38,312 nucleotides of DNA, taken from contig NW_021835806.1 of assembly GCF_006345805.1 (NCBI RefSeq), forward strand, positions 1-38,312, given 5' to 3'. The DNA comes from Octopus sinensis. Lineage: Eukaryota. Under the pieces are notes generated by a model that had not been told where the DNA came from, did no database searches, and saw only the letters and a list, made by a program, of their open reading frames with translations. Each line of letters starts with the position of its first letter. Position 1 is the stretch's first letter. Both the position numbers and the translations under genes were made by a program. Shown piece by piece: positions 1 to 27,195 of this stretch.

Positions 1-285
1 AGCAATCCCTCTCTTTACACTGTAATGATGGTGGGAAATGAAGTTGATGTATCGTCCGGTAAAGGTCGGCTTGCGGTATACGGATGTTCTGAATCCATAC
101 TTGGTGCGTGTTATTAATACCTCCAGGTTCGAAATTTCCCTAAGGCACCTGATGAAGGCTGGAGGGTATATCAGCCTAAACGTTGTGTTAACAACAAACA
201 AGATGAGTTCTCATCTCTTAAATATCGAACTAGGCTCTCTAAAATGTCTTGTATCCTTTCTTCCTTCAATACGTGTGTCATTTCT
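1..285 (-). mobile_element. Penelope-like element fragment, copy 1 (truncated by the window)
   Basis: Identical in structure to 7709-7995. Confidence 0.8.
145..188 (+). ncRNA. Minimal type-I hammerhead-like motif with an altered core, copy 1
   Basis: GCAC-CTGATGA-AGGCTG-loop-CAGCC-TAAA-CGTT-GTGT; TAAA replaces the canonical GAAA. Confidence 0.55.
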
Positions 286-330
286 TTGAATGCATTGGCT
301 TGCATTGCATCATACAGTCAGTATCTACTT

Positions 331-425
331 TTATGAATGGGAAAGTGGCAATGGTTGTCTGTGCAACAGACGAAAGGCTTCCACTTGGATAAAGACAATG
401 TTTAATGGATGTAGTGATAGATTTA
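331..425 (-). CDS. Candidate terminal exon, xNLSLHPLNIVFIQVEAFRLLHRQPLPLSHS*
   Basis: caagactag|TA acceptor in phase 1. An upstream ttcaagcag acceptor also exists. The homologous AG is altered in the copies near 8125 and 20095. Confidence 0.3.
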
Positions 426-812
426 CTAGTCTTGACGAAAGACAAGTGTTCAAACTAGGAATGCATTTCCTTGTAAGTGAACCAGATAATGAGTGGCACC
501 TGCTTGAATAACAACAACAATAACCAGTCAGTAAACGTAGTAAAATGTAAAACAAACAAAATCTTTTACTCACGTGATAAAGTATAACATATTATATATC
601 CCCGTTCAAAAAGAGAATATTCAATCTATTGTTTCTTCTAAATTATCCATTTTACCAACCATGTTAACTTGAGTGGATAATTTATGAAATGTCAATAATA
701 TCGATCCCTTTAATTTAATTAGTTTACAGTTAAAACGTGCAATTGGAATTTAGGAATAGAACATATTCTTAATAATTCCTACGAACAAAATAGCTCAGGT
801 AAACCTATTTAC

Positions 813-838
813 CTGCTTGTTCTGAGATTTGGGAAACA
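813..838 (-). CDS. Candidate 26-nt micro-exon, copy 1, (V)FPKSQNKQ, phase 1-0
   Basis: atttatttcag| acceptor, CAG|gtaaat donor. Confidence 0.45.
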
Positions 839-1124
839 CTGAAATAAATATTTCAAGGTTTTTCAAATTTATAATAAAATATTTTAAATCTAGATATTAA
901 TAATATATATTTTATTATTGTGGGACTTTCTGATCATCAATGGGCAGCCTGTGTATGGACAGCTGTGTATGCTACATAGTAGGGAAATGTATGTAGTGAA
1001 CACAGAGGACGTGTAAAGGCTTGAACAAAATGGAACCAGCATGCTCCACTGGATGGTGACTGTCAGTGTGCAGGTATAAAATGCTGACACGTTTTAAGAT
1101 AAAAGTCGAGAGTTATCACATGTA

Positions 1125-1290
1125 TGTAGTACGCAAGACAGACGACTGTGCTAGTATGACCATGTGATGTGTATGAATAAGATCAGCTGTATAAAGAGCA
1201 CCGATCTGTAAATGTGGAGAGAACCTCAAGAAAACTGGAAGGGAGTGTTGAGAAATGAGCTTCAGATCTTGAACCTGAGAGTCAATCGGT
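1125..1290 (+). mobile_element. Decayed RTE-clade LINE 3' fragment (copies near 8833-8995 and 20795-20955)
   Basis: Degenerate version of QERRLxWYGHVMRMDxDSCVKK...RKTW, compared with the RTE copy at 37693-37893. Confidence 0.6.
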
Positions 1291-1493
1291 AGAAAAGCGG
1301 GTATCTTTAAGAGACATATGTTCCTCGACCAATGGGGGTGGATAGTATCTCAGAATAGGACGTGTCTTGGGTAGAGACCGCCCATCAAATACATTTTAGA
1401 AAGAACATCAGACGATAAATGATGAGGATGTATTCGATTGTATTGTTATATGCAGCTAGTATTTATCTTGAAAGAGAAACAGACAATGGTTTC

Positions 1494-1567
1494 TCAGCAG
1501 AAAACCAAAGTCATTACTTCGATAAAGACAATGCTTAGTGGATGGAACGATAAATTTAATGTTGTAT
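1494..1567 (-). CDS. Candidate terminal exon, (D)TTLNLSFHPLSIVFIEVMTLVFC*, copy 1
   Basis: ttgtcttttcttag|AT acceptor, phase-1 entry. Confidence 0.4.
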
Positions 1568-2499
1568 CTAAGAAAAGACAACAGCAAAAATAAAAGTTTA
1601 AAACATTGTTAAAAGATATGAAGAGATAATATTTTTTAACTGCAACATCCGACATAATTCGTGATATAATAACTCAAATCTTCCTAATTTAACTAAAATA
1701 TTGCACACAGTTCCTACAACACCATTTCCAAAACGCTTCCGTCCCATTAATTGTCGATAAACACAGAAATAGCTACACCAGTCGTCTCGTTAGCTGAAAA
1801 CACTGATATACACCAGTTGAGCTTACTACTATAGAGAGAAATCCGTGATTATCTGGCAATGTTTAACTTGACCATTACAAAATTCGTTAACCCTAGAAGA
1901 AGTTCAGATGTACAATTACAAACTGCACGGTGGAGAGATATCATATTGTACCCTGACTGCTACCACAATCCGCCGTACACAACAAAACGCTGCATTTTAG
2001 CAGTTCCTTGTGTGATGATTAACAAAATGAAAGAATGGAATATCTGACGGGTTAGATCTGTATTTTTCACTGAGGCTATGACCAGCTACCTCTGGTTATA
2101 GATCTATTAAAGGGCTGAGTGGAAATTAAACTACACATGGTAAGATTTCTCTCTCCGACACATAATAGACATACAAAATTGAGATAAGCCCGCCCCAGCA
2201 CGAATTTTATCAGAGAATGAAGTAAATAACAATCGAATAAACAAAACAGAAACGACTTTTTACTATTTTAGATAAATCAATTAATTACTGCACACCAATT
2301 TCTAATTACTGGACAACTTCAAACAATCTGACACCGTGACAGCAGGTATCCTGAAACATTGTACACTTGCACAAAACCTTATTAACTACATTTAACTGGT
2401 CATCTACATACTATTGCATAAACATATCCGAAATGATACATAATAACTGACAATTAAGCATATATAAGCATGACGCAAATATAGATCAAACTGGAAGCA

Positions 2500-3600
2500 T
2501 TGAATCTTACGTTTGCCAAGAAGTTTCGAATACTCTCTTTCTTTTAACCCATTCCCATGTTTTCGTTTTCATCTTAATGTCCTTACAATGATTGGACAAA
2601 CAGGCAGCGCACCAGTGTCGAAACTTTTATAAGTTTTTCCCTAAACGTATGCATAGTTTCTCCTGCTACTTTGAACTTCACTTTGTTCTGCTGATCTTCC
2701 ACAAATAACAGATTGTATTATTTATTTGCTTCAAGTCAAATTCTTCACAAAGTAATCAGTCCACCCAGGCTATCCAGAAATATTTGCATAACATTTTGGT
2801 CTCTACATAGTATTTTTATGTCATCCATGAATGTCTTGTCTGGTGCTTTCACTTGGGTCATTTCTTTTGAGCAGACTACTGATCTAAGTAACATCTCGAA
2901 ACTGAAGGATTAATATTGTGCACCCTGCTCCAATTCCGATGACAGTCCCTGTAAAATGGTTTGTAATGAGCTGCCTTTTGAAATTGTTATAACAGCTCAT
3001 CATCAGACCTTAAAATTGCCCCAGTATGTAAAAGAAGTTCATTGATTTCATCAATAAATTGTATGGTCCACAACCATATGCTTTAGAGCGATCGAGCCAT
3101 ACAACATTCCAATTACTTCAATTCTTCTTTTTGTGTTGATCCCAGTTTGACATTTCATGTCCTACAAACCAAGAAAGTCAGGGATTTCCAGTCCTCTGCA
3201 CACTTTCCATCACATATCAATTATTTTGTAGGTGTATAGGTGATCTCTTAGCATGTACATCCACGTAAAGCTTGTCATTAAGGATTGAAACTAATTTCAA
3301 TTGGCCAATTGATTGTGATTCAGATTCCTTTCAAAAGTGAACTCTTTCTGCCTTATATCAGTCATAAATCCCTTCAATTTTATACCACAAACCCTTACTA
3401 TTATATAATGCTTATATAATGCAGTTTTTGCTCTTGCCTCCTTCTTGCTGCAATCTCTCAGTTAAAAGTTTAATTCCTGACTTTCTTTGAGAATTTATTA
3501 GAAAGACATCAACGTTTCTTTTGCTTGTACCACAATAAGATGCACCTAGGACACTTTATCAAGTGCTTTTAGGCAAGTATACCCTCATATAAAACCTAGA
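2500..3600 (-). mobile_element. Decayed Hero/R2-like non-LTR RT fragment
   Basis: Minus-strand frames give VVWLDRSKAYGCGPYNLLMKSMNFFYI and KTFMDDIKIL...KVKFKVAGETMHTFREK (FMDD-type RT) with many stops. Confidence 0.7.
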
Positions 3601-3678
3601 ATGGTTAATTGAGATGTGTCTTCTATCCGTTCATGACGTGGGAGCCTGGAAATCAGACGATATAGGATGAAGAGATTG

Positions 3679-3794
3679 TCAATTATTGTATAGTATCTTG
3701 CAACCAGTTTCTGTTTCGAAGTAAGAAATATAGACAACAACTATCACAGAAGTAAGTTGGATAAGGGCAATGTGTAGCGTATGTAATAAAATAT
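3679..3794 (-). CDS. Candidate terminal exon, (D)ILLHTLHIALIQLTSVIVVVYISYFETETGCKILYNN*
   Basis: ctgttttatttcacag|AT strong acceptor, phase-1 entry, hydrophobic stretch, TGA stop. Confidence 0.45.
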
Positions 3795-4288
3795 CTGTGA
3801 AATAAAACAGACTGCTTATACTTGAAATACCTTTCAAAGTACTTTTTTAGAAATATCAGCCAAAATAACAACATTAATCTATCAGCAAACATAATATAAA
3901 ATGTAAAACAAAGAGAAATGTCATTAACACGAATGTTTATCGCTAAACAACTACAAATATTAGTTTTCTCTTCCAAAGTAAAATATTAAATCTATTGTCT
4001 TCGAAGTTATCCCTTTTACAAACCATGCTCACCACATCGGATATTTTGTGAAATTACAATAATATCGATATGTTTTATTGGGTAAACTGGCAATATGACC
4101 ATTCCGAAATATAATAATATCTGTTTCAACACACGACTTCACATAAAAAATCTTGCACAACAAATATTTAATAGAATTATTATGCATCAAACTTTTCAAA
4201 TGCAAAATTTGGATTGGAAGATGTTGTCAGTCATTCAGTAAAGTTAAAATTTACAGTAATCGATAAGGTAATGATATTTTATACTCAT

Positions 4289-4351
4289 CATCAAATGATT
4301 CTGTTTCAAGCATAGGAAAGTTTGGAGACAGTGTTGTTTGCGACTATGTGT
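4289..4351 (-). pseudogene. Dead 63-nt cassette exon, copy 1
   Basis: ccg in place of the cag acceptor, atgagt in place of the gtgagt donor, in-frame TAG; length is still a multiple of 3. Confidence 0.55.
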
Positions 4352-5195
4352 CGGAAAAATATATTTTCAATCAAGTTTTACATTTTACACTATAATATGA
4401 TTATATCTATCAATCAAAAATATTCCATTACCGTAAGATATCTTTATTTTTAATGGTCAACGGCTGACCACTATGCTTTTGGTCAGCACGCTTTACAGAT
4501 TCAATATAACAAAACTCTTTATTAAGAGCCACCAAAATATTAACTAATTTCGTTCTGAAGAAGAACTGACTTGGACAGTGACAACTCATCTAGTCCATAG
4601 GAGCCTGGAAATCTGACGATAAATGTCGGGGTTGTTGCCTGTGATTCACTTGCATCGTGCAACCTGTATCTTTCATGAAGTAAGAAGGCAGATACCGATT
4701 ATCACAGTAGCAAAGAAATGTTTTCTATTCGGGAAAAGACAATGTGTAGTGGATGTAATAATAAAATCTACCAGTGTAACAAAACAGAGAGTTTACACTT
4801 GGAACGCATTTCATTGCAATTCTTCTAGATTATGAGAAGCATCCGTTTAAATAGCAACAATAACAATAATAACCTTGAAGTAAACATGATAAAAAGTGTG
4901 ACAAAAACAGCTGTCATTAACTCTAAATTTATATTCCTAAACAAATTAGCTTAGTTCTCTCTTTCTCAAAACTATACAAAATATATTCCCGTTTCAATTT
5001 TCCATTTTACAAACCACTCTAACCTCGTTGGATATTTTGTGAACTTTCAGTAATATCGATATATTGAATAGAATTATTATACAACATTTCGAATCTAATT
5101 AGGATAGAATCTGTACTCAGTCGTTCTAAAATACAAAAGCTCGGGAGAAGGTGAAATGTATAGAAATCGGTAAATTAATATCATTTCATACTTAC

Positions 5196-5282
5196 AATCA
5201 TTCTCTGATTGGTCTACTCCAGAATACGATTTAAAACCGGAATCGGTACTGGCTCCCGATACCATACTTCCTGTTGAATGTT
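5196..5282 (-). CDS. Candidate 87-nt cassette exon A, (E)HSTGSMVSGASTDSGFKSYSGVDQSEND, phase 1-1
   Basis: tattcatttcag| acceptor, T|gtaagt donor, open frame. Confidence 0.7.
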
Positions 5283-5734
5283 CTGAAATGAATATTTTCA
5301 AGATTTGCGTTGTATAGGATGATGTGCTTATCTTTGTTAATAATCTATATTTCACAATTGTGACATATTTCTATTTTCAATTGTCAGCGACTGACCACTA
5401 TGCTTTTGGTCAGCACGTTTTACAGTTTCAATATAACAAAACTCTATATTAAGAGCAACCAAAATATTAACTAATTTCCTATCTATACTCTTTGTATTCA
5501 GATATCAAATATAATTCAACAATATTGTAATTATTTAATTTCATTGTCTCTTTATAACAGAATTTTGCTTTTAGTTTTCTCTTTCCTTCCGTATTTCTCT
5601 GATTCTCAGGGTGTTTAAGGCACATGTATAAAGAGAAGATAACTCAACTACTGAAAAACACTGCTATAAAGAGATAATTACGTGAAGTAATTGCAATATT
5701 GTTAAATTATGTTGGATGTCACAATACATTGCGT

Positions 5735-6170
5735 TGATATATGAAGGTTGGTCTCAAAACGAAGCCGGATTGGACCAATCGCATAAACCTCTTCAACTAC
5801 ACCTATTTACCTGCAATTTACAACAGGTGTGAAAGCTGGTACACGACGAAGTGGGAGGGTGTGAGTCTGATAATGGCCCAAAACACAATCGAAAAATCGA
5901 GGTTTGGGAGTGTTGCTAAATTTGCACATCAAGAGTGAGGCGATCAGAGAGAAATCCGGTGTGAGAGACATCATCACTAAAAACTTATGCCAAAATTTCA
6001 GATAGGACAGGTAGCCAGCTCCCTGAAAATATTTAGAGATGCACAGTTGTTGAGAGTTATATACACGAGCAGAGGAGGTCACTGAGAGCGAATCCAAAAG
6101 TGAGTATTTGACGAAATACGACATCCTACGTAGGTGAGAAGGTCAAGATGAAGACAGAAGTGGAGGGTGC
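5735..6170 (+). mobile_element. Decayed RTE-clade LINE C-terminal fragment (copies near 12590-13020, 15835-16260, 17705-18135)
   Basis: LFNYTYLPAIYNRCESWYTTK...AQNTIEKSRFG and IREKSGVRDIIT resemble the RTE post-RT region. Confidence 0.6.
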
Positions 6171-6896
6171 ACTGTGATCTCTGGTGTCGTCAATACACTC
6201 AGTCAGTCGATCATGGTCAAGGTGGTATTTCTGTCACATCTATGACATAGCGTTTTCACCTCTACCATAGTAAACCTCACGAACCAAACTTCTCGTTTTC
6301 TGCTCAACTCAAATGCCAAGCAAGTGGATAACCATATATCGATCTTCAAAAACTGGTTGCACCACTTATAGTTAGAAAAAAAGCACCAGCTCTCTCTGTG
6401 AAACATTGATTCTGGAAATTTTTGATTTTAACTGCCCACATCAACCTGCGTAGTTGTGACGCATCTATGACATGGCGTTTTCACATCTACAGTAGAACTC
6501 ACTAATCAAACAATCTTATAATTTTCTGCTCACTTCCAGTGTCAACAAAGTTAATCATCAAATATCTATCTTCAAATTCATTTCACTTTAGACTACAAAC
6601 ACCTACTCTCTCTGTGAAACATTGCTGCTGGTAATCTTTAATTTTAACTGCCCACATCTACGTTCACCAGAATGTCATCTCATGTAGAAAATATTTGAAG
6701 ACCCCTGAATGAAATAGATTTCATCCCAAGTGAGTAATGATTAATTCTACACAGGCGTAGAGGAAAGAAATATCAGATGTCCCCCAAAACTGTGAACACC
6801 TAATGTACTTCATACAAGGTCATGGTAAATTTACTATCAGTGAAATATGACAGAATCTTTATGGAAATCGATGAGGTAATATAATTTTAAACTCAC

Positions 6897-6947
6897 CATA
6901 TTGTTTTGAACTGAGTTGGGTCCTTTTGGCAAAATCTCTTCCATAAT
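6897..6947 (-). CDS. Candidate 51-nt cassette exon, (D)YGRDFAKRTQLSSKQY, phase 1-1
   Basis: tattcatttcag| acceptor, G|gtgagt donor, open frame; paralog of 18857-18907. Confidence 0.7.
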
Positions 6948-7444
6948 CTGAAATGAATATTTTCACGTATTACATTTTATTGTATGATTTGGTTATATTT
7001 CTTAATCTGTATTTTGGTATTCTTCGACATTTATATCTTAAATGGTCAACGGATGATCACTATATCTTTGGTGAGTAACTCATACTGTTTAACACAATAT
7101 TTAGAGCCTTCAAAATATGCGCAAATTTCCTATCTATCCCCTCTGTATTCAGATATCCAGCATAATTTAACAAGATTGAAATTATTTAATTACCTCTTTA
7201 GAACAGTATTCTTCCTCTATGCCTTTCCTTTCATATCTCTCTGTATTTGAGCGAGTTTAATGTACAGATATAAGAGAGGAAAACTAAACTAATGAGAAAC
7301 AGTGTTATAAAGAGATAATTACGTGAAGTAATTACAATATTGTTAAATTATGTCGGATGTCACATTACAGTGCGGTGATATATATATATCAGTAATCAAG
7401 CGATCAGAGAGAATTCTGAGCGACATCATCACCAAATGCAGATG

Positions 7445-7995
7445 GAAGAAGTGTTGTATTACTCTTGAATAGTGTCCTGATGTCATATGGGCCGCATATC
7501 TTTTGTATCTTTTCGGAGAGGCCTTTCACATAAGGTAGACAGACTGTGGACAGTTTATTGGTTTCATCCTCTCTTTTCTTCATAATTGGAGTGGATAGTA
7601 TGTTTTTGGGTAGTTGTTGCTTAATAGATTGTTACTTAGCGTGATCATTTCTTCGTTGTGGGTTTCACGATCGCTACTTATATTCTTTACTCGATGTTTT
7701 AGGCACTGAGCAATCCCTCTCTTTACACTGTAAGGATGGTGGGAAATGAAGTTGATGTATCGTCCGGTAAAGGTCGGCTTGCGGTATACGGATGTTCTGA
7801 ATCCATACTTGGTGCGTGTTATTAATACCTCCAGGTTCGAAATTTCCTCAAGACACCTGATGAAGGCTGGAGGGTATATCAGCCTAAACGTTGTGTTAAC
7901 AACAAACAAGATGAGTTCTCATCTTTTAAATATCGAACTAGGCTCTCTAAAATGCCTTGTATCCTTTCTTCCTTCAATACGTGTGTCATTTCTTT
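7445..7995 (-). mobile_element. Penelope-like element fragment: RT C-terminus plus an inverted LTR-like piece
   Basis: LEVLITRTKYGFRTSVYRKPTFTGRYINFISHHPYSVKRGIAQCLKHR and LPYVKGLSEKIQKIC are typical of the PLE RT thumb/linker. Confidence 0.85.
7853..7896 (+). ncRNA. Minimal type-I hammerhead-like motif with an altered core, copy 2
   Basis: ACAC-CTGATGA-AGGCTG-gagggtatat-CAGCC-TAAA-CGTT-GTGT; stem I is ACAC/GTGT. Confidence 0.6.
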
Positions 7996-8520
7996 GAATG
8001 CATTGGCTTGCTTTGCATCATACAGTCAGTATCTATATTTATGAATGGGAAAGTGGCGATGGTAGTCTGTGCAACAGACGAAAATCTTCCACTTGGATAA
8101 AGACAATGTTTAATGGATGTAATGATAGATTTACAAGTCTTGAAGAAAGACAAGTATTCAAACTCGGAATGCATTTCCTTGTACGTGAACAAGATAATGA
8201 GTGGCACCTGCTTGAATAACAACAACAATAACCAGTCAGTAAACGTAGTAAAATGTAAAGCAAGCAAAATATTTAACTCACCTGAAAAAGAATAACATAT
8301 TATATATCCCCGTTCAAAAAGAGAATATTCAATCTATTGTTTCTTCTAAATTATCCATTTTACCAACCATGTTAACTTGAGTGGATAATTTATGAAATGT
8401 CAGTAATATCGATCCCTTTAATATAATCAGTTTACAGCTAAAACATGCAATTGAAATTTATGAATAGAACACATTCTTAATAATTGTGACAAACAAAATA
8501 GCTCAGGTAAACCTATTTAC

Positions 8521-8546
8521 CTGCTTGCTCTGAGACTTGGGAAACT
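8521..8546 (-). CDS. Candidate 26-nt micro-exon, copy 2, (E)FPKSQSKQ, phase 1-0
   Basis: atttatttcag| acceptor, CAG|gtaaat donor; 3 differences from copies 1 and 3. Confidence 0.45.
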
Positions 8547-9201
8547 CTGAAATAAATATTTCAAGGTTTTTAAAATTTATTATAAAATATTTTAAATCTA
8601 GATATTAATAATATATATTTTATTATTGTGGGACTTTCTGATCACCAATGGGCAGCCTGTGTATGAACAGCTGTGTAAGCTACATAGTAGTGAAATGTAT
8701 GTAGTGAACACAGAAGACGTTTAAAGGCGTGAACAAAATGGAACCAGCACGCTCCACTGGATGGTGACTGTCAGCGTGCAGGTATAAAATGCTGACACGT
8801 TTTAAGATAAAAGTCGAGAGTTATCACATGTATGTAGTACGCAAGACAGACGACTGTGCTAGTATGGCCATGTGATATGTATGAATAAGATCAGCTGTAT
8901 AAAGAGCACCGATCTGTAAATGTGGAGAGAACCTCAAGAAAAATGGAAGGAAGTGTTGAGAAATGAGCTTCAGATCTTGAACCTGAGAGTCAATCGGTAG
9001 AAAAGCGGGTATCTTTAAGAGACATATGTCCCTCAACCAATGGGGGTGGATAGTATCTCAGAATAGGACGTGTCTTGTGTAGAGACCGCCCATCCAATGC
9101 ATTTTAGACAGAAAATCAGACGATAAATGATGAGGATGTATTCGATTGTATTGTTATATGCAGCTAGTATTTATCTTCAAAGAGAAAGAGACAATGGTTT
9201 C

Positions 9202-9275
9202 TCAGCAGAAAACCAAAGTCATTACTTCGATAAAGACAATGCTTAGTGGATGGAACGATAAATTTAATGTTGTAT
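9202..9275 (-). CDS. Candidate terminal exon, (D)TTLNLSFHPLSIVFIEVMTLVFC*, copy 2
   Basis: ttgtcttttcttag|AT acceptor, phase-1 entry into the family frame. Confidence 0.4.
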
Positions 9276-10249
9276 CTAAGAAAAGACAACAGCAAAAATA
9301 AAAGTTTAAAACATTGTTAAAAGATATGAAGAGATAATATTTTTTAACAGCAACATCCGACATAATTCGTGATATAACAACTCAAATCTTCCTAATTTAA
9401 CTAAAATATTGCACACAGTTCCTACAACACCATTTCCAAAACGCTTCCGTCCCATTAATTGTCGATAAACACAGAAATAGCTACACCAGTCGTCCCGCAA
9501 GCTGAAAACACTGATATACACCAGTGGAGCTTAGTACTATAGAGAGAAATCCGTGATTATCTGGCAATGTTTAATTTGACCATTACAAAAGTCGTTAACA
9601 CTAGAAGGAGTTCAGATGTACAATTACAAACTGCACGGTGGAGAGATATCATATTCTACCCTGACTGCTACCACAATCCGCCGTACACAACAAAACGAGA
9701 CATTTTAGCAGTTCCTTGTGTGATGATTAACAAAATGAAAGAATGGAATATCTGACGGGTTAGATCTGTATTTTTCACTGAGGCTATGACCAGCTACCTC
9801 TGGTTATAGATCTATTAAAGGGCTGAGTAGAAATTAAACTACTTGTGGTAAGAATTCTCTCTCCGACACAAAATAGACATACAAAATTGAGATAAGCCCG
9901 CCCCAGCACCAATTTTATCAGAGAATTATGTAAATAACTATCGAATAAACAAAACAGAAACGACTTTTTACTATTTTAGATAAATCAATTTCTGCACACC
10001 AATTTCTAATTGCTGGACTAACTTCAAACAATCTGACACCGCGACATCAAGTATCCTGAAACATTGTACACTTGCACAAAACCTTATTAACTACATTTTA
10101 CTGGTCATCTACATACTATTGCATAAACATATCCGAAATGATACATAATAACTGACAATCAAGCATATATAAGCATGACGCAAATATAGATCAAACTGGA
10201 AGCATTGAATCTTACGTTTGCCAGCAAGTTTCGAATATTCTCTTTCTTT

Positions 10250-11370
10250 TAACCCATTCCCATGTTTTCGTTTTCATCTTAATGCCCTTACAATTATTGG
10301 ACAAAGAGGCAGCGCAACACTGTCTGAAACTTTTATAAGTTTTTCCCTGAATGTATGCATGTATGCGGTGCCTCAGCATGGCCACAGCTCATGAGCTGAA
10401 ACTAGAATCAATCAATCAATCAATCATAGTTTCTCCAGCTACTTTGAACTTCACTTTGTTCTGCTGATCTTCCACAAATAACAGATTGTATTATTTATTT
10501 GCTTCAAGTCAAATTCTTGACAAAGTAATCAGTCCACCCAGGCTATCCAGAAATATTTGCATAACATTTTGGTCTCTACATAGTATTTTTATGTCATCCA
10601 TGAATGTCTTGTCTTGTTCTTTCACTTGGGTCATTTCTTCTGAGCAGACTACTGATCTAGGTAACATCTCGAAACTGAAGGATTAATATTGTGCACCCTG
10701 CTCCAATTCCGATGACAGTCCCTGTAAAATGGTTTGTAATGAGCTGCCTTTTGAAATTGTTATACCAGCTCATCATCAGACCTTCACACTGCCCCAGTAT
10801 GTCAAAGAAGTTCATTGATTTCATCAATAAATTGTATGGTACCCAACCATATGCTTTAGAGCGATCAAGGCATACAACATTCCAATTACTTCAATTCTTC
10901 TTTGTGTGTTGATCCCAGTTTGACATCTCATGTCCTTCAAACCAAGAAAGTCAGCGGATTCCAGTCATCTGCACACTTTCCATCACATATCAATTATTTT
11001 GTAGTTGTATAGATGATCTCTTAGCATGTACATCCACGTAAAGCATGTCATTAAGGATTGAAACTAATTTCAATTGGCCAAATAATTGTGATTCAGATTC
11101 CTTTCATAAGTGAACTCTTTCTGCCTTATATCAGTCATAAATCCCTTCAATTTTATACTACAAACCCTTACTATTATATAATGCTTATATAATGCAGTTT
11201 TTGCTCTTGCCTCCTTCTTGCTGCAATCTCTCAGTTAAAAGTTTAATTCCTGACTTTCTTAGAGGTTTTATTAGAAAGACATCAACGTTTCTTTTGCTTG
11301 TACCACAATAAAATGCACCTAGGACACTTTATCAAATGGTTTGTTTTAGGAAATTATACCCTCATATAAA
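10250..11370 (-). mobile_element. Decayed Hero/R2-like RT fragment, recent duplicate
   Basis: Colinear with 2500-3600. Confidence 0.7.
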
Positions 11371-11455
11371 ACCTAGAATGGATAACTGAGATTCGTCTGC
11401 TATCCGATCAAGAGGTGGGAGCATGGAAATCAGACGTTAAAGGATGAAGAGATAG

Positions 11456-11571
11456 TCAATTATTGTATAGTATCTTGCAACCAGTATCTGTTTTGAAGTA
11501 AGAAATATAGACAACAACTATCACAGAAGTAAGTTGGATAAGGGCAATGTTTCGCGTATGTAATGAAATAT
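11456..11571 (-). CDS. Candidate terminal exon, (D)ISLHTRNIALIQLTSVIVVVYISYFKTDTGCKILYNN*
   Basis: atttatttcacag|AT acceptor, phase-1 entry, 18-residue hydrophobic stretch, TGA stop. Confidence 0.45.
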
Positions 11572-12066
11572 CTGTGAAATAAATCAGACTGCTTATACTT
11601 GAAATACATTTCAAAGTACTTTTTTAGAAATATCAGCCAAAATAACAATATTAATCTATCAGCAAACATAATATAAAATGTAAAACAAAGAGAAATGTCA
11701 TTAACACGAATGTTTATCGCTAAACAACTACAAATATTAGTTTTCTCTTCCAAAGTGAAATATAAAATCTATTGTCTTCCAAGTTATCCATTTTACAAAC
11801 CATGCTCACCACATCGGATATTTTGTGAAATTACAATAATATCGATATGTTTTATTGGCTAAACTGGCAAAATGACCATTCCGAAATATAATAATATCTG
11901 TTTCAACACACGACTTCACATAAAAAAATCTTGCACAACAAATATTTAATAGAATTATTATGCATCAAACTTTTCAAATGCAAAATGTGGATTGGAAGAT
12001 GTTGTCAGTCATTCAGTAAAGTTAAAATTTACAGTAATCGATAAGGTAATGATATTTTATACTCAT

Positions 12067-12129
12067 GATCAAATGATTCTGTTTCAAGCATAGGAAAGTT
12101 TGGAGACAGTATTGTTTGCGACTATGTGT
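12067..12129 (-). pseudogene. Dead 63-nt cassette exon, copy 2
   Basis: Acceptor reads ttttccg, donor reads atgagt, in-frame TAG; same module position as intact cassettes. Confidence 0.55.
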
Positions 12130-13559
12130 CGGAAAAATATATTTTCAAGTTTTACATTTTACACTATAATGTGATTATATCTATTAATCAAAAATATTCC
12201 ATTACCGTAAGATATCTTTATGTTCAATTGTCAACGGCTGACCACTATGCTTTTGGTCAGCACGCTTTACAGATTCATTACAACAAAACTCTATATTAAG
12301 ATCCACCAAAATATTAACTAATTTCCTATCTTTACTCTCTGTATTCAGACATCAAATATAATTTAACAATATTGTAATTATTTAATTTCATTGTCTCTTT
12401 ATAACAATATTTTGCTTTTAGTTTTCTCTTCCTTCCGTATTTCTCTGATTTTCAGGGAGTTTAAGGCACAGGTATAAAGAGAGGATAACTCAACTACTGA
12501 AAAACAGTGCTATAAAGAGATAATTACGTGAAGTATTTGCAATATTTTTCAATTATGTTGGATGTCACAGTACATTGCATAGATATGTGAAAGTTGGTCT
12601 CAAAACGAAGCTGGATTCGACCAATCGCATAAATCTCTTCAACGACACCTATTTACCTGCAATTTACAACAGGTGTGAAAGCTGGTACACAATGAAGAGG
12701 GAGGAAGTGAGTCTGATAATGGCCCAAAGCACATTCGAAAAATCGAGGTTATGGAATGTTGCTAAATTTGCACATCAGGAGTGAGGCGATCATAGAGAAA
12801 TCAGGTGTGAGAGACATCATCACTAAAAACTTATGCCAAAATTTCAGATGGGACAGGTAGCCAGCTCACTGAAATTATTTAGGGATGCACAGTTGTTGAG
12901 AGTTATATACGCGAGCAGAGGAGGTCACTGAGAGCGAATCCAAAAGTGAGTGTTTGATGAAATACGACATGCTACGTAGGTGAGAAGGTCAAGATGAAGA
13001 CAGAAGTGGAGGATGCACTGTGTTCTCTGGTGTCGTCAATACACTCAGTCAGTCGACCATGGTCAAGGTGGTATTTCTGTCACATCTATGACATAGCGTT
13101 TTCACATCTACAGTAGAACTCACTAATCAAACATTCTTATAATTTTCTGCTCACTTCCAATGTCAACAAGGTTAATCATCAAATATCGATCTTCAAATAC
13201 ATTTCACACCACTTCATTTTAGACAACTAGCACCTACTCTCTGCGTGAAACATTGCTGCTGGTAATCTTTAAGTTTAACCGCTCTCACCAACGTTCGCCA
13301 GAATGTCTTCTGATACAGAAGATGTGTGAAACCTCCTTACGGAAACAGTTTTCTTTCCAGATGAGTAATAATTTATTCTACTAAGTTGTTGGCGAAATTG
13401 GTATCAGGTACCCCAAAACAACACCGCCGTTTATCTACACATCATTGCATAAAATGCATCCGAAATGGTACATAATAGAACTGATTCTCAAAAATACATA
13501 CGCAAGCCATGCTAGAAACATCATATACTATATTTACTTTGAGGTTTTCACAATCTATT

Positions 13560-14620
13560 GCTTATAAACCATTATCGATTTTTACCATGATCTCAATATC
13601 TCTATTCTTACTAGACAATAGGGAAGCCTACCAGCATACGAAATACTTACAAATTTGTCATTAAAATATGTCATGGTTTCTCTTGATACGTTGTATATCA
13701 CTTGTTTCTGCTGCCCTTTGACAATTAAAAAACCGTATTATTTATTTGCATTAAGTCTTAATCTCGACCAAGGATTAAATCCATTCCGGTTGTCCAAAAC
13801 TATTAGCATATTCTTTTGATCTCTTTCCCTTATTTGTATGTCATCGATGATGTTTCTCTTCCAGCTATCTGCTGAGCAGTCTGCTGATCTGAGTAACATC
13901 TCATTAACAAAGACTGACATTTTGCATCCTACTCTAGTTTCACGCCAATCCTACTCTCTGTATAATATGTGTGTAACGAATAGCATTTGGAAATTGTTAA
14001 ACCAACTCTTCGTCATATTTTTAAAATCCTCCAGTATGTAAACGAAGGCCATTGCTTTTCTCGATGGCTTATGTTGTTCACATCCCTAAGCATTGGACTG
14101 ATCCAACGATACAACATTCAAATCACTTCTATTTTTCTATGTATGTTGGTCCCACTTTTACAAGGCATGTCCCAAACACTCAGGATGTCAACGGATTCTT
14201 TTGCAGTCACACTTTCAGTCTCATTAGAGTTATTTTGTCGATGTGTAGTTGATCTCTGACCATGGAAATCTTAGCAATCAGAATTGCAATCGGTGCCAAC
14301 TTGCGAATTAGTTTCGCTTTAGCTTAAATTGTACGCAAAATCTTTCTCTCTTCCTCCAGCCATCAATCACACCAACTTTATACCCGAAAGTTCCACCATT
14401 ATGTGATGCCTACAACAAAACCTTGTACAAGACTTGAAACTTTCTAATGTACAGCCTCACCTTGCCTTATACCCAAAGATAACTACTTCTTTCTTGCTGC
14501 AATCCTCAAGCTCAAATTCTTCGTTCCTGATTTTGTTGGACATTTTCTTAGAGAGACGATAATATTTCACATGCTTTGCAACAATAAAATGCACCTAGAA
14601 CCCTTTACAAGGTGGTTGGT
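13560..14620 (-). mobile_element. Decayed Hero/R2-like RT fragment, older paralog
   Basis: Recognisable but much more diverged homolog of 2500-3600, in the same module position. Confidence 0.55.
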
Positions 14621-14850
14621 GTCAGGAATGGCATAGCACTACATGAAAGCAGTGATGTTTAAGTGAGATATGTTCCTCTACGAATGAAGAAGGGAAGTAG
14701 TTCTGAAGAAGAACTGACTTGGACAGCGACAACTCATCTAGTCCATAGGAGCCTGGAAATCTGACGAGAAATGTCGGGGTTGTTGCCTGTGATTCACTTG
14801 CATCGTGCAACCTGTATCTTTCATGAAGTAAGAAAGGCAGATACCGATTA

Positions 14851-14918
14851 TCACAGTAGCAAAGAAATGTTTTCTATTCGGGAAAAGACAATGTGTAGTG
14901 GATGTAATAATGAAATTA
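14851..14918 (-). CDS. Candidate stop-containing terminal exon, xISLLHPLHIVFSRIENISLLL*
   Basis: gttacactggtag|TA acceptor entering, in phase 1, the frame shared by the terminal-exon family. The copy near 4767 is 2 nt shorter and frameshifted. Confidence 0.35.
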
Positions 14919-15351
14919 CTACCAGTGTAACATAACAGAGAGTTTACACTTGGAACGCATTTCATTGTAATTCTTCTAGATTATGAGAAGCATCCGTTTA
15001 AATAACAACAACAAACAATAATAACCTGAAGTAAACATGGTAAAAAATGTGACAAAAACAGCTGTCATTAACTCTAAATTTATATTCCTAAAAACAAATT
15101 AGCTTAGTTCTATCTTTCTCAAAACTATACAAAATATATTCCCGTTTCAATTTTCCATGTTAAAACCACTCTAACTTCGTTGGATATTTTGTGAAATTTC
15201 AATAATATCGATATATTGAATAGAATTATTATACAACAAACCTTTCGAATCTAATTAGGGATAGAATCTGTACTCAGTCGTTCTAACATACAAAGCTCGA
15301 GATAAATTGAAATGTATAGAAATCGGTAACTTAATATTATTTCATACTTAC

Positions 15352-15438
15352 ATCCTTCCTCTGATTCATCTACTCCAGAAGATGATTGTAAACCGGAATC
15401 GGTACTGGCTCCGGGTACTATACTTGCTGTTGAATGTT
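15352..15438 (-). CDS. Candidate 87-nt cassette exon B, (E)HSTASIVPGASTDSGLQSSSGVDESEEG, phase 1-1
   Basis: tattcatttcag| acceptor, T|gtaagt donor, open frame. Confidence 0.7.
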
Positions 15439-17161
15439 CTGAAATGAATATTTTCAAGATTTGCGTTGTATAGCATGATGTGCTTATCTTTGTTAATAAT
15501 CTATATTTCACTATTGTGACTTATTTCTATTGTCAATGGCTATATAAAGGGCCACCAAAATATTAACTAATTTCCTCTCTTTACTCTCTGTATTCAGATA
15601 TCAAATATAATTTAACAATATTGTAATTATTTAATTTCATTGTCTCTTTATAACAATATTTTGCTTTTAGTTTTCTCTTTCCTTCCGTATTTCTCTGATT
15701 TTCAGGGAGTTTAAGGCACAGGTATAAAAAGAGGATAACTCAACTACTGAAAAACATTGCTATAAATAGATAATTACGTGAAGTAATTGCAATATTGTTA
15801 ATTATGTTGGATGTCACAATACATTGCATTGATATATGAAAGTTGGTCTCAAAAAAGTCGGATTGAACCAATCACATAAACCTCTTCAACAACACCTATT
15901 TACCGCAATTTACAACAGGTGTGAAAGCTGGTACACAACGAAGATGGAGGATGTGAGTCTGATAATGGCCCAAAGCACAATCGAAAAATCGAGGTTTGGG
16001 AGTGTTGCTAAATTTGCACATCAAGAGTGAGGCGATCAGAGGGAAATCAGGTGTGAGAGACTCATCACAAAACTTATGACAAAATTTCAGATGGGACAGG
16101 TAACCAGCTCACTGAAAATATTTAGAGATGCACAGTTGTTGAGAGTTATATACACGAGCAGAGGAGGTCACTGAGAGCGAATCCAAAAGTGAGTGTTTGA
16201 CGAAATACGACATGCGACATAGGTGAGAAGGTCAAGATGAAGACAGAAGTGGAGGGTGCACTGTAAACTCTGGTGACTTCAATACACTCAGTCAGTCGAT
16301 CATGGTCAAGGTGGTATTTTGTCACATTTATGACATAACGTTTTCACCTCTACCGTAGTAAACCTCACAAACCAAACTTCTCGTTTTCTGCTCAACTCCA
16401 ATGTCAAGCAAGTGGATACCATATATCTATCTACAAAAACTGGTCACACCACTTACCGTTAGACAGAAAGTACCTGCTCTCTGTGAAATATTGCTTCTGG
16501 TAATCTTTGATTTTAACTGCCCACATCAACGTGCGTATTTGTGACGCATCTATGACATGGCGTTTTCACATCTACAGTAGAACTCACTAATCAAACAATC
16601 TTATAATTTTCTGCTCACTTCCAGTGTCAACAAGGTTAATCATCAAATATCTATCTTCAAATTCCTTTCACTTTAGATACAAACACCTACTCGCCGTGTG
16701 AAACATTGCTGCTGGTAATCTTTAATTTTAACTGCCCACATCTACGTTCACCAGAATGTCATCTCATGTAGAAAATATTTGAAGACACCTTAATGACATA
16801 GATTTCATCCTAAGTGAGTAATGATTAATTCTACACAGGTGTAGAGGAAAGAAATATCAGATGTCACATCAGATGTCATTAACTCTAAATTTATATTCCT
16901 AAACAAATTAGCTTAGTTCTCTTTCTTAAAACTATACTAAATATATTCCCGTTTCAATTTTTCATTTTACAAACCACGCTATCCTCGTTGTATATTTTGT
17001 GAAATTTCTGTAATATCGATATATTGAATAGAATTATTATACAACAAAACTTTCGAATCTAATTAAGGAATAGAATCTGTACTCAGTCGTTCTAACATAC
17101 AAAAGCTCGGGAGAAGGTGAAATGTATAGAAATCGGTAACTTGAAATTATTTCATACTTAC

Positions 17162-17248
17162 TATCTTCCTCTGATTCATCTTCTCCAGAAGGTAAACTTA
17201 AACGGTGACTGATACTGGCTCTTTGAAATATACTTCGTGTCAGAATAT
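17162..17248 (-). CDS. Candidate 87-nt cassette exon C, (D)ILTRSIFQRASISHRLSLPSGEDESEED, phase 1-1
   Basis: gtcatttcag| acceptor, A|gtaagt donor, open frame. Confidence 0.7.
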
Positions 17249-18856
17249 CTGAAATGACTATTTTCAAGAGTTGCGTTGTATAGCATGATGTGCTTATCTT
17301 TGTTAATAATCTATATTTCACTATTGTGACATATTCCTATTGTCAATGGTCAACGGCTGACCACTATGCTTTTGGTCAGCACGTTTTACAGTTTCAATAT
17401 AACAAAACTCTATATTAAGAGCCACCAAAATATTAACTAATTTCCTATCTATACTCTCTGTATTCAGACATCAAATATAATTCAACAATATTGTAATTAT
17501 TTAATTTCATTGTCTCTTTATAAGAATATTTTGCTTTTAGTTTTCTCTTTCCTTCCGTATTTCTCTGATTTTCAGGGAGTTTAAGGCACAGGTATAAAGA
17601 GAGGATAACTCAACTACTGAAAAACATTGCTATAAAGAGATAATTACGTGAAGTAATTGCAATATTGTTAAATTATGTTGGATGTCACAATACATTGCGT
17701 TGATATATGAAAGTTGGTCTCAAAACGAAGTCGGATTGGACCAACCACATAAACCTCTTCAACAACACCTATTTACCGGCAATTTACAACAGGTTTGAAA
17801 GCTGTACACAACGAAGATGGAGGATGTGAGTCTGATAATGGCCCAAAGCACATTCGAAAAATCGAGGTTTGGGAGTGTTGCTAAATTTGCACATCAAGAG
17901 TGAGGCGATCAGAGGGAAATCAGGTGTGAGAGACATCATCACTAAAAACTTATGACAAAATTTCAGATGGGACAGGTAACCAGCTCACTGAAAATATTAA
18001 GAGATGCTCAGTTGTTGAGAGTTATATACGCGAGCAGAGGAGGTCACTGAGAGCGAATCCAAAAGTGAGTGTTTGACGAAATACGACATGCTACGTAGGT
18101 GAGAAGGTCAAGATGAAGACAGAAGTGGAGGGTGCACTGTGATCTCTGGTGTCGTCAATACACTCAGTCAGTCGATCATGGTCAAGGTGGTATTTCTGTC
18201 ACATCTATGACATAGCGTTTTCACCTCTACCGTAGTAAACGTCACGAACCAAACTTCTCGTTTTCTGCTCAACTCCAATGTCAAGCAAGTGGATAACCAT
18301 ATATCTATCTACAAAAACTGGTCACACCACTTACCGTTAGACAGAAAGTACCTGCTCTCTGTGAAATATTGCTTCTGGTAATCTTTGATTTTAACTGCCC
18401 ACATCAACCTGCGTATTTGTGACGCATCTATGACATGGCGTTTTCACATCTACAGTAGAACTCACTAATCAAACAATCTTATAATTTTCTGCTCACTTCC
18501 AGTGTCAACAAGGTTAATCATCAAATATCTGTCTTCAAATTCCTTTCACTTTAGATACAAACACCTACTCGCTGTGTGAACATTGCTGCTGGTAATCTTT
18601 AATTCTAACTGCCCACATCTACGTTCACCAGAATGTCATCTCATGTAGAAAAATTTTGAAGACCCCTGAATGACATAGATTTCATCCCAAGTGAGGAATA
18701 ATTAATTCTACACAGGTCTAGGAGAAAGAAATATCAGATGTCCCCCAAACTGTTACCACCTAATTTACTTCATATAAGCTCATGGTAAATTTACTATCAG
18801 TGAAATATGACAGAATCTTTATGGAAATCGATGAGGTAATATAATTAAAAACTCAC

Positions 18857-18907
18857 CATAATGACTTAAACTGTGTTCGGTCCTTTTGGGGAAATCTCTT
18901 CCATAAT
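18857..18907 (-). CDS. Candidate 51-nt cassette exon, (D)YGRDFPKRTEHSLSHY, phase 1-1
   Basis: tattcatttcag| acceptor, G|gtgagt donor, open frame. Confidence 0.7.
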
Positions 18908-19404
18908 CTGAAATGAATATTTTCACGTATTACATTTTATTGTATGATTTGGTTATATTTCTTAATCTATATTTTGATATTCTTCGACATTTATATCTTA
19001 AATGGTCAACGGATGACCACTATATCTTTGGTGAGCAACTCATACTGTTTAACACATTAATTAGAGCCTTCAAAATATGCGCAGATTTCCTATCTATCCT
19101 CTCTGTATTCAGATATCCAGCATGTTTTAACAAGATTGAAATTATTTAATTACCTCTTTATAACAGTATTCTTCCTCTATGCCTTTCCTTTCGTATCTCT
19201 CTGCATTTGAGTGAGTTTAAGGTACAGATATAAGAGAGGAAAACTAAACTAATGAGAAACAGTGTTATAAAGAGATAATTACGTGAAGTAATTGCAATAT
19301 TGTTTAATTATGTCGGATGTCACATTACAGTGCGGTGATATATATCCGTAATCAAGCGATCAGAGAGAATTCTGGTGTGAGCGACATCATCACCAAATGC
19401 GGAA

Positions 19405-19955
19405 GGAAGAAGTGTGGTTTTACTCTTGAATAGTGTCCCGATGTCATATGGGCCGCATATCTTTTGTATCTTTTCGGAGAGGCCTTTCACATAAGGTAGA
19501 CAGACTGTGGACAGTTTATTGGTTTCATCCTCTCTTTTCTTCATAATTGGAGTGGATAGTATGTTTTTGGGTAGTTGTTGCTTAATAGATTGTTACTTAG
19601 CGTGATCATTTCTTCGTTGTGGGTTTCACGATCGCTACTTATATTCTTTACTCGATGTTTTAGGCACTGAGCAATCCCTCTCTTTACACTGTAAGGATGG
19701 TGGGAAATGAAGTTGATGTATCGTCCGGTAAAGGTCGGCTTGCGGTATACGGATGTTCTGAATCCATACTTGGTGCGTGTTATTAATACCTCCAGGTTCG
19801 AAATTTCCTCAAGACACCTGATGAAGGCTGGAGGGTATATCAGCCTAAACGTTGTGTTAACAACAAACAAGATGAGTTCTCGTCTCTTAAATATTGAACT
19901 AGGCTATCTAAAATGTTCAGTATCCTGTCTTCCTTCAATACGTGTGTCATTTCTT
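19405..19955 (-). mobile_element. Penelope-like element fragment, copy 3
   Basis: ORFs 19320-19544 and 19541-19870 carry the same PLE motifs. Confidence 0.85.
19814..19857 (+). ncRNA. Minimal type-I hammerhead-like motif with an altered core, copy 3
   Basis: Same sequence as copy 2. Confidence 0.6.
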
Positions 19956-20479
19956 TGAATGCATTGGCTTGCATTGCATCATACAGTCAGTATCTATATT
20001 TATGAATGGGAAAGTGGCATGGTAGTCTGTGCAACAGACGAAAATCTTCCACTTGGACAAAGACAATCTTTAATGGATGTAGTGATAGATTTCCTCGTCG
20101 TGAAGAAAGAAAAGTGTTCAAACTTGGAATGCATTTCCTTGTAAGTGAACCAGATAATGAGAGGCACCTGCTTGATATACAACAACAAAACCAGTCAGTA
20201 AACGTAGTAAAATGTAAAACAAACAAAATCTTTTACTCACGTGATAAAGTATAACATATTATATATCCCCGTTCAAAAAGAGAATATTCAATCTATTGTG
20301 TCTTCTAAATTATCCATTTTACCAAACATGTTAACTTGAGTGGGTAAATTATGAAATGTCAGTAATATCGATCCCTTTAATTTAATTAGTTTACAGTTAA
20401 AACGTGCAATTGGAATTTAGGAATAGAACATATTCTTAATAATTCCTACGAACAAAATAGCTCAGGTAAACCTATTTAC

Positions 20480-20505
20480 CTGCTTGTTCTGAGATTTGGG
20501 AAACA
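20480..20505 (-). CDS. Candidate 26-nt micro-exon, copy 3, (V)FPKSQNKQ, phase 1-0
   Basis: atttatttcag| acceptor, CAG|gtaaat donor. Confidence 0.45.
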
Positions 20506-21226
20506 CTGAAATAAATATTTCAAGGTTTTTCAAATTTATAATAAAATATTTTAAATCTAGATATTAATAATATATATTTTATTATTGTGGGACTTTCTGA
20601 TCACCAATGGGCAGCCTGTGTATGGACAGCTGTGTAAGCTACATAGTAGTGAAATGTATGTAGTGAACACAGAGGACGTGTAAAGGCTTGAACAAAATGG
20701 AACCAGCACGCTCCACTGGATGGTGACTGTCAGCGTGCAGGTATAAAATGCTGACACGTTTTAAGATAAAAGTCGAGAGTTATCACATGTATGTAGTACG
20801 CAAGACAGACGACTGTGCTAGTATGACCATGTGATGTGTATGAATAAGATCAGCTGTATAAAGAGCACCGATCTGTAAATGTGGAGAGAACCTCAAGAAA
20901 ACTGGAAGGAAGTGTTGAGAAATGAGCTTCAGATCTTGAACCTGAGAGTCAATCGGTATGTAAAAGAAGTTTATTGATTTCATCAATAATTTGTTTGGTA
21001 CACAAGACGTCCCTGAAACCTGACACCTCTGCTCCTCTTATTGACAGCGGGAAAAAAAAACCTTTGACAACTTCTTTAGTTTTGGCCACCAGCTCAACTT
21101 TGGTGTTGCAGTCAGAGCGAATGGTATATTTCTCAACCGTGTCCCATACAAACTAATCAATGAGATTTCAATCAGGGAAACTAGGAAGTTTACAAATGGG
21201 TCCACTAAAACTGCATAAGTACTCAG

Positions 21227-27144: not shown

Positions 27145-27195
27145 CAGGTGGTTCTGCCAACATCTGGACTTCCGGTTTTGACGACTTTGGACCCT
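27145..27195 (-). CDS. 51-nt phase-1/phase-1 exon after the RING, (E)GPKSSKPEVQMLAEPP
   Basis: ttgtttatttcag| acceptor, G|gtgagt donor, no stop codon, continues the phase-1 end of the RING exon. Confidence 0.8.

Follow-up and report, generated by a model that had tools for sequence, protein, structure and literature searches.

The mini-exon linker of a MIB2-like gene in Octopus sinensis

We analysed a window of 38,312 nucleotides (nt) from the Octopus sinensis contig VCDQ01005844.1 (assembly GCA_006345805.1), in which three copies of an 87-nt mini-exon (A, B and C) had diverged from one another several times more than the introns around them. The only gene annotated in the window, P0008, was located on the minus strand (813-35316) and was described by NCBI as a partial "E3 ubiquitin-protein ligase MIB2-like" of 287 amino acids. 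The gene encoded ankyrin repeats and a RING finger, followed by a linker made of tandemly duplicated mini-exons. According to exact mapping, the exons followed each other in the order ankyrin (35185-35316 and 31507-31686), RING, 51c, C (17162-17258), B (15352 to ~15447), 51a, A and 26a, with the limits of the others as given in Table 1. Five further exons (26c, 51b, 59b, 26b and 59a) were left out of the model.

The 87-nt exons were annotated by NCBI as serial phase 1-1 coding exons of one mRNA and not as alternatives. A single frame (offset 2, phase 1-1) was open in all three copies, and each of them was flanked by ...tttcag at the acceptor and by gtaagtatgaaa at the donor. A first-pass annotation of this DNA had found neither indels nor stops in these exons and had considered their splice sites intact, and this was borne out, since length, frame and splice sites were preserved in the three copies. 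It had also proposed that the segments were translated. P0008 translated them in the frame that had been inferred, as canonical and frame-preserving exons, which suggested at the level of annotation that the proposal was probably correct. The NCBI model lengthened B by 9 nt upstream (15439-15447, 'IISE'), giving a non-canonical AT acceptor; the canonical CAG acceptor kept the same frame. In C, a copy-specific T-to-G change made a TAG acceptor 9 nt upstream of the exon, and this acceptor was used by the NCBI model (17163-17258, 'VISD'). The evidence behind the extension of B may derive from a C-like copy or from another allele.

Divergence of the exons and of their introns

In the MAFFT alignment, which was gapless over the exon, A and B differed at 14/87 nt (16.1%), A and C at 33/87 (37.9%), and B and C at 28/87 (32.2%), with 9 amino acids differing between A and B; these were the counts that the first-pass annotation had reported. 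The divergence of the aligned flanks (~1,650 nt) was 5.6%, 6.0% and 4.2% for the same pairs, respectively (exon versus pooled flanks, Fisher P = 5e-4, 7.5e-17 and 6e-16). The downstream intron was taken as a fair neutral yardstick because its tree matched that of the exon. Relative to it, the exon had diverged 2.9-fold more for A-B (P = 0.0025), 3.6-fold for A-C (P = 1.6e-8) and 3.1-fold for B-C (P = 2.3e-6). Over all comparisons with flanks and introns the excess was 2.9-7.7-fold, so the earlier statement that the exon diverged several-fold faster than its introns held, at about 3-fold against the downstream intron.

The excess was confined to the exon. Among 87-nt sliding windows, those in the flanks contained 0-12 mismatches (usually 2-6) and the exon window was the maximum in every pair, narrowly so for A-B (14 vs 12 mismatches). 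The island of divergence ran from nt 2 to nt 87 of the exon. The peak survived proper alignment, and misalignment was rejected as its source: a gapped alignment removed just 4 mismatches, leaving 29 for A-C and 24 for B-C, and the sole indels that it added were a -1 and a +1 at nt 1 and 8 of C, which offset each other. No net indel was present in the exon, although 2.3-6.9 were expected from the indel-to-substitution ratio of the flanks (Poisson P(0) = 0.10, 0.056 and 0.001), which argued that length or frame was under constraint.

The same excess was found in an independent pair of 51-nt exons from the same array. Namely, 51a and 51b differed at 8/51 nt, seven of these differences being nonsynonymous, and their flanks differed by 4.9% (P = 0.005). 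Differences among the 26-nt exons (3/26) were not significant, and the 59-nt units had no excess divergence (2/63). As a control, the 51c-type exon was compared across three loci and was not above its flanks (7.8%, 19.6% and 23.5% vs 5.8%, 30.5% and 30.9%). A tandem mini-exon pair from the paralogous locus L007 diverged by 23% against 40% and 18% for its flanks. Since the 51c-type and L007 mini-exons behaved normally, a general property of the mini-exons in this family was rejected, and the exon acceleration was specific to the array in VCDQ01005844.1.

Two mutational explanations were also set aside. An RNA-editing or other transition-biased footprint, as well as conversion biased towards guanine and cytosine (GC), was rejected, since the ratios of transitions to transversions in the exons were 6:8, 17:16 and 12:16, there was no A/G excess, and C had lost GC. 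The effect of CpG decay or compositional disequilibrium was too small: there were 2-4 CpGs per exon, and the gain in rate due to composition was estimated, rather than computed, at ~15%.

Lineage-specific and block-wise changes

For the lineage tests, the majority sequence of A, B and C was used as the ancestor. In the exon (87 sites), 9 changes were specific to A, 4 to B and 23 to C. The corresponding numbers were 47, 18 and 11 in the far upstream flank (1,211 sites) and 9, 8 and 24 in the downstream flank (321 sites). On the C lineage, the number of synonymous differences (sd) was 2.0 and their proportion per synonymous site (pS) was 0.10, compared with an intron rate of 0.075. The nonsynonymous differences (nd) numbered 18, and their proportion (pN) of 0.29 was far above that of the intron (P = 3e-7). 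On the A lineage, pN was 0.098 compared with 0.028 for the intron (P = 0.007) and pN/pS was 0.96. The B lineage was not significant.

The changes specific to C were not scattered. They formed 7 clusters (sizes 6, 1, 4, 6, 4, 1, 1) where 12.9 were expected at random (P = 0.001), and four of the clusters were blocks of 4-6 nt. Blocks of at least 4 changes occurred 4 times in 87 exon nt and once in 1,633 flank nt (P = 3e-5). Much of the C excess was therefore a wholesale swap of 2-4 adjacent codons, with the stretches in between (AAGTAT, GAGCCAGTA and TTCTGGAG.AGA..AATCAGAG) perfectly conserved. The blocks turned the neutral-to-acidic, Ser/Thr/Gly-rich N-terminal half of the peptide basic (ILTRSIFQRASISHRLSLP), and the C-terminal acidic SGxDxSExx patch was retained in the 87-nt exons. 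Between B and C, 13 codons were identical and no difference was purely synonymous; codons were either identical or changed at several positions. Searches of the window and of six related loci for donors of the C blocks with 11-mers returned chance-level matches only. Local template switching was rejected, as 9-mer donors within 1.5 kilobases (kb) on either side, on both strands, gave 1 match versus 1.9 expected.

Copy history and growth of the array

The three copies did not share one genealogy along their length. B and C were sisters in the far upstream flank, and A and B were sisters in the exon and in the downstream flank. These discordant trees indicated that B was a recombinant whose junction was located at a 60-nt deletion (15539/15540), ~110-170 nt upstream of the B exon. 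Thus, the history of the B-C upstream flank was younger than that of the exon, and recombination in the introns exaggerated the contrast between B and C. The first-pass annotation had stressed the near-identity of the ~70 nt upstream of these two exons; the similarity was real (3 differences in 87 nt), but the contrast drawn from it was somewhat overstated.

Three units made up the tandem segmental repeat that carried the array: unit 1 covered 1-7708, unit 2 covered 7709-19669, and unit 3 began at 19670. Unit 2 held both B and C because of an extra 1.87-kb internal duplication. A collinear 4.1-kb duplicated block with 94% identity (4908-8999 = 16870-20958) contained the A/C and 51a/51b pairs. 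Recent tandem duplication, in units of 7.7 kb and 12 kb and in the internal one of 1.87 kb, had expanded the array together with unequal recombination. The start of the contig was in exact register with the 7.7-kb/12-kb repeat (1-300, 7709-8008, 19670-19969). Therefore, the assembly probably breaks inside the array, and more units, possibly with the 3' end of the gene, probably lie outside the contig.

A profile built with nhmmer detected 11 copies of a 120-nt upstream intron flank, all on the minus strand and one before each mini-exon. A conserved downstream intron segment likewise followed eleven small exons (three of 26 nt, three of 51 nt, two of 59/67 nt and three of 87 nt). The 120-nt flank also preceded mini-exons in the paralogous loci L003, L004, L006 and L007. 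Thus, the linker of this family, whose members combine ankyrin repeats, a RING finger and a death domain (Ank-RING-death-domain), was made of small cassette exons with homologous intron flanks. An origin of the exon-plus-flank unit from a transposable element or a short interspersed nuclear element (SINE) was ruled out, since the 11 copies were co-oriented within collinear segmental duplications and the same flanks preceded genuine coding exons of the paralogues.

Table 1. Positions of the exons, intron flanks and repeats in the window
Feature	Position	Strand	Remarks
Ankyrin-repeat exon 1	35185..35400	-	Pfam Ank, Ank_2, Ank_4; P0008 model begins at Met at 35316
Ankyrin-repeat exon 2	31507..31686	-	
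RING-finger exon (zf-C3HC4_3)	28536..28676	-	PF13920, E = 4.2e-9, P0008 residues 103-147
51-nt mini-exon 51c	27145..27195	-	GPKSSKPEVQMLAEPP; first linker exon after RING; conserved in paralogues
51-nt mini-exon 51b	18857..18907	-	YGRDFPKRTEHSLSHY; unused in NCBI model
87-nt mini-exon C	17162..17248	-	ILTRSIFQRASISHRLSLPSGEDESEED; most divergent copy
87-nt mini-exon B	15352..15438	-	HSTASIVPGASTDSGLQSSSGVDESEEG
59/67-nt unit 59b	12063..12129	-	copy 59a at ~4285-4351
51-nt mini-exon 51a	6897..6947	-	YGRDFAKRTQLSSKQY; in P0008
87-nt mini-exon A	5196..5282	-	HSTGSMVSGASTDSGFKSYSGVDQSEND; phase 1-1, cag...gtaagt boundaries, open frame; P0008 residues 250-278
26-nt exon 26a	813..838	-	FPKSQNKQ; copies 26b at 8521-8546 and 26c at 20480-20505
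Conserved 120-nt upstream intron flank (exon A example)	5283..5402	-	nhmmer profile, E = 1e-22 to 1e-31
120-nt flank, copies 1-6	839-958, 4352-4475, 5283-5402, 6948-7062, 8547-8664, 12130-12249	-	
120-nt flank, copies 7-11	15439-15557, 17249-17368, 18908-19022, 20506-20625, 27196-27315	-	
Tandem segmental repeat bearing the array	1..20958	-	self-BLAST blocks, 94-97% identity
Inverted-repeat arms	5476-5566/5655-5745 and 17441-17532/17621-17712		equivalents near 7303-7369, 12508-12574, 15758-15823, 19263-19329

Several of the small exons appeared to be remnants. The 26-nt exons corresponded to the 72-nt first death-domain exon of the family (L004 23399-23479) minus 46 nt, which changed the phase from 1-1 to 1-0. 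The 59a and 59b units had the shared flanks, a CAG acceptor mutated to CCG, and a stop in the inherited frame, and 59b was probably a dead exon. In the paralogues, the first death-domain exon has a 3' half (LGRDWWQV) that the peptides of 51a and 51b (YGRDF.KRT...) weakly resembled (z = 3.1-3.8 in local alignment), and the exons of the array may have originated from it as rearranged relics.

A conserved inverted repeat with ~91-nt arms (75% complementary) and an 88-nt loop was located 200-460 nt upstream of the 87-nt exons, the 51-nt exons and 59b. It could be an insertion resembling a miniature inverted-repeat transposable element, or an intronic RNA hairpin.

The Ank-RING-death-domain family and the rest of the contig

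Paralogues from O. sinensis, O. vulgaris and O. bimaculoides followed a common plan of ankyrin repeats, RING finger, variable mini-exon linker and death domain. The ankyrin exon at 35185-35400 was 97% identical to the O. sinensis MIB2-like P0001. The linker exons differed between paralogue isoforms (P0009 vs P0010, P0023 vs P0024) in the manner of cassette-type skipping, and the equivalent of 51c was such an alternative cassette, carried by P0010 and absent from P0009. Thus, the linker mini-exons of the paralogues were used and alternatively spliced. A tblastn search with the death-domain region of a paralogue gave no match in the window; since the contig stops inside the array, a death domain may be present further on. 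None of the paralogue models retrieved contained MIB/HERC2 or ZZ domains, and the 5' end of the P0008 gene falls outside the contig. Reading the array in phase 0 directly from the ankyrin exon was rejected, since the RING exon intervenes in the true model.

No signal peptide was evident in P0008 or in the paralogue models, and the peptides of the 87-nt exons were rich in Ser, Asp and Glu and lacked Cys. From this composition we took the 87-nt segment to be a putative disordered linker and not a recognisable binding surface. The link to host-pathogen or self/non-self systems that had been suggested for these exons was a guess and found no support; the product is an intracellular-type Ank-RING ligase in which they encode a Ser/Asp/Glu-rich linker.

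The small O. sinensis contigs L001 and L002 were 95% identical to the 5' part of the locus (28748-38312), which indicated that the gene is present in the assembly more than once, as several near-identical copies or as haplotypes that were not collapsed. Homology with L002 stopped at a (TA)n tract near 30854. The DNA of the window was AT-rich (~35% GC) and contained transposon fragments as well as (TA)n, (CA)n and (GT)n microsatellites, long ones being located at 27660-27730, 28840-28900, 29005-29045, 29226-29330, 30850-31060 and 35060-35160. Open frames at 25362-26658 (-), 29804-30435 (-) and 36401-37516 (+) looked by eye like fragments of transposons, among them reverse-transcriptase-like and Tc1/mariner-like ones. 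Further frames of this kind at 1-210, 7583-7918 and 19544-19903 (-) were all within the duplicated units and were thus copied together with the exons. A Pfam scan of six of the transposon-like frames gave no match. A sequence judged by eye to be a tRNA-derived SINE was located just downstream of the 51c-type exon (~27040-27110, minus strand) and was common to the paralogous locus L004 (20140-20350).

Discussion

We tentatively placed selection that favoured or retained amino-acid change in the duplicated linker modules ahead of the other causes of the exon acceleration. The 87-nt module was amplified by recent tandem duplication and unequal recombination, and after duplication the exons changed ~3-fold faster than the introns that shared their genealogy and 6-8-fold faster than the pooled flanks. 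Multi-nucleotide or patch-type mutations, as suggested by the block-wise pattern, may have been the raw material from which selection on the spliced product would have favoured or retained replacements in the new linker modules. Selection was the likeliest cause because only a force acting on the spliced product "sees" exon boundaries: neutral decay cannot outrun the adjacent intron, and blind mutation has no reason to halt at splice sites or to keep the length. The three copies fit selection for new protein sequence but cannot prove it.

A number of observations weighed against this model. The pairwise Nei-Gojobori ratios of nonsynonymous to synonymous divergence (dN/dS) were 0.94, 1.69 and 2.48, and none was significantly above 1, with ~20 synonymous sites. 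On the C lineage pN/pS was 2.9 and fell short of significance (Fisher P = 0.067). Accordingly, of the diversifying selection that the first-pass annotation had proposed, the part that stood was the elevation of pN above the intron rate on the C and A lineages; a significant dN/dS did not emerge and the changes were block-wise. Differences were even over codon positions (13/10/10 for A-C), and only three copies were available for comparison. Relatives of the exon peptides were not detected either. A word-indexed search of 5.8 billion proteins returned none that resembled them, and a full HMMER scan of 1.84 billion representatives gave a spurious low-complexity artefact as the sole match. The word-indexed search with the concatenated peptides missed even P0008, which holds them exactly, so this negative was weak by itself; P0008 was returned when the search was seeded with the ankyrin part, and the miss looked like a quirk of tool sensitivity, perhaps due to word sampling or to the composition filter. 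No 87-type copies were found in a metagenome DNA pattern scan, and an nhmmer scan of the six related octopus contigs detected other exon types only.

When clusters were counted as events, exon C (7/87) had no significant excess over the intron (17/321, P = 0.23). This also counted against selection and suited a non-adaptive process restricted to the exon, in which a few multi-nucleotide events replaced 4-9-nt blocks of C by complex mutation or patchwork micro-conversion. Such blocks could originate from short-tract conversion by diverged 87-type exons elsewhere, from cDNA-templated repair or from error-prone synthesis, and the changes would show in the exon only, as the flanks of the donor would be near-identical or absent. 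The strong clustering of the C changes and the codons of B and C that were either identical or multiply changed agreed with this process, as did the many paralogous contigs of the family and the end of the array at the contig break, beyond which more copies probably exist. However, the 11-mer and 9-mer searches detected no donor in the window or in the six related loci, the protein searches found 87-type peptides in no other protein, and the excess on the A lineage and in 51a/51b was made of mostly dispersed changes. A blind process would also leave the splice-site-bounded blocks and the kept length and frame unexplained. We therefore regarded exon-restricted mutation or conversion as possible but somewhat unlikely. 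The pairwise pS values (0.17-0.27) were likewise above the intron rate, mostly from multiply changed codons, and the discordant flank trees indicated that recombination or gene conversion had acted at the array. Both points weakened the case for selection and were compatible with old exons in young introns, that is, exon types that diverged long ago and whose introns were made alike afterwards, within the tandem array, through gene conversion or unequal crossing-over, with conversion tracts halted at the diverged exons by selection or by rejection of mismatched heteroduplexes. Block junctions located 100-350 nt from the exons (15539/15540, 16865/16870 and 4551/4552) pointed in the same direction, as did 59b, where an upstream flank 88% identical to the 87-type ended ~5 nt from the acceptor and the exon and downstream flank were only ~66% alike. 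On the other hand, the A/C and 51a/51b pairs were in one collinear block whose exons were identical at duplication, so there was no initial barrier to conversion. Moreover, A and B exceeded their collinear flanks on both sides, it was pS and not pN that lay near the intron rate on the C lineage, and two independent conversion tracts would need to stop exactly at both splice sites. Thus, an ancient divergence of the exons was unlikely.

The last explanation was that the exons are non-functional relics at a decaying 3' end through which the NCBI model threads an open frame. The copy of the gene in VCDQ01005844.1 may indeed be decaying, which would also speak against selection on its product: there was no death domain in the contig, the 26-nt exons were truncated, phase-changing deletion relics, the acceptor was lost in the 59-nt units, and the model skipped five exons and needed the non-canonical acceptor for B. 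In addition, the searches gave no homologues of the peptides, and a 28-codon open frame was weak coding evidence according to an estimate that was not computed. Yet neutral decay cannot run 3-8-fold faster than an adjacent neutral intron, and it would leave unexplained the splice sites intact in three copies, the lack of indels, and an island bounded by splice sites. We considered this explanation improbable. Similarly improbable was a further scenario, in which the linker mini-exons of octopus Ank-RING-death-domain ligases would have been diversified by an exon-targeted block-wise process (patchwork conversion or hypermutation, then selection). The outcome would be a family of signalling adaptors in which each member has a regulatory linker of its own, and which would match conotoxin-type hypervariability inside the cell.

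The array looked like an instance of the known pattern of hypervariable exons and conserved introns. "Accelerated evolution" of snake-venom PLA2 was reportedly described by Nakashima et al. in 1993/1995. Conotoxin mature-peptide exons and citrus SCAmpPs are short hypervariable coding segments in near-identical paralogues (PMC4409773), and whether selection or targeted hypermutation shapes such segments is a matter of debate, for which the same paper cites Conticello 2001. As in the conotoxin, SCAmpP and PLA2 class, a short coding stretch of the octopus gene diverged several-fold more than the adjoining intron or untranslated region in recent duplicates, length and frame were kept, and dN was about equal to or above dS. 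The members of the conotoxin class are bioactive peptides that are secreted and either Cys-framed or cyclic, and many copies of them have been sequenced; in contrast, the octopus exons encode a predicted linker of an intracellular-type RING ligase and were represented by three copies. Schistosome micro-exon genes (MEGs) are reported to have symmetrical exons that are very short and a multiple of 3 nt in length, to vary through exon skipping and to evolve fast (PMC4350168). The octopus gene resembled MEGs in coding from short symmetrical exons (51 and 87 nt), with isoform variation only in the paralogues (P0009/P0010 and P0023/P0024). [quoted passage not shown]

Other comparisons were only partial. 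Similar to vertebrate MIB2/Mind bomb, and consistent with the NCBI name 'MIB2-like', the octopus protein had ankyrin repeats followed by a C-terminal zf-C3HC4_3 RING. However, its paralogues ended in a death domain and carried the mini-exon linker, and MIB/HERC2 and ZZ were not seen in the retrieved models. The equal length of 87 nt, the 1-1 phase and the shared flanks were reminiscent of a Dscam-type mutually exclusive cluster, but the NCBI model included all three copies in series and the paralogues showed cassette-type skipping. In the primate L/M (red/green) opsin genes, the well-known precedent for old exons in young introns, gene conversion has reportedly made the introns uniform and the exons have remained distinct (Shyue et al. 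1994; Zhou and Li 1996). There, purifying selection on each paralogue maintains the differences at a small number of tuning sites. The octopus array shared with the opsins tandem paralogues, introns more alike than exons, and a mosaic, discordant history. It was unlike them in that 16-38% of the exon differed and the divergent exons were contained in a collinear young duplication block.

A literature search on the octopus Ank-RING-death-domain family found nothing specific, and little appears to have been published on it. If the exon-limited acceleration is non-adaptive, the array would illustrate cleanly that diversifying selection can be mimicked in tandem arrays by recombination mosaics and multi-nucleotide changes. 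If it is adaptive, the array would offer a compact natural case for the old question of selection or targeted mutation in hypervariable exons, since the introns that serve as neutral yardstick belong to the duplicated block itself. It would then also show that an octopus family of signalling proteins with ubiquitin-ligase and death domains, expanded in this lineage, has innovated very recently at the level of modules.

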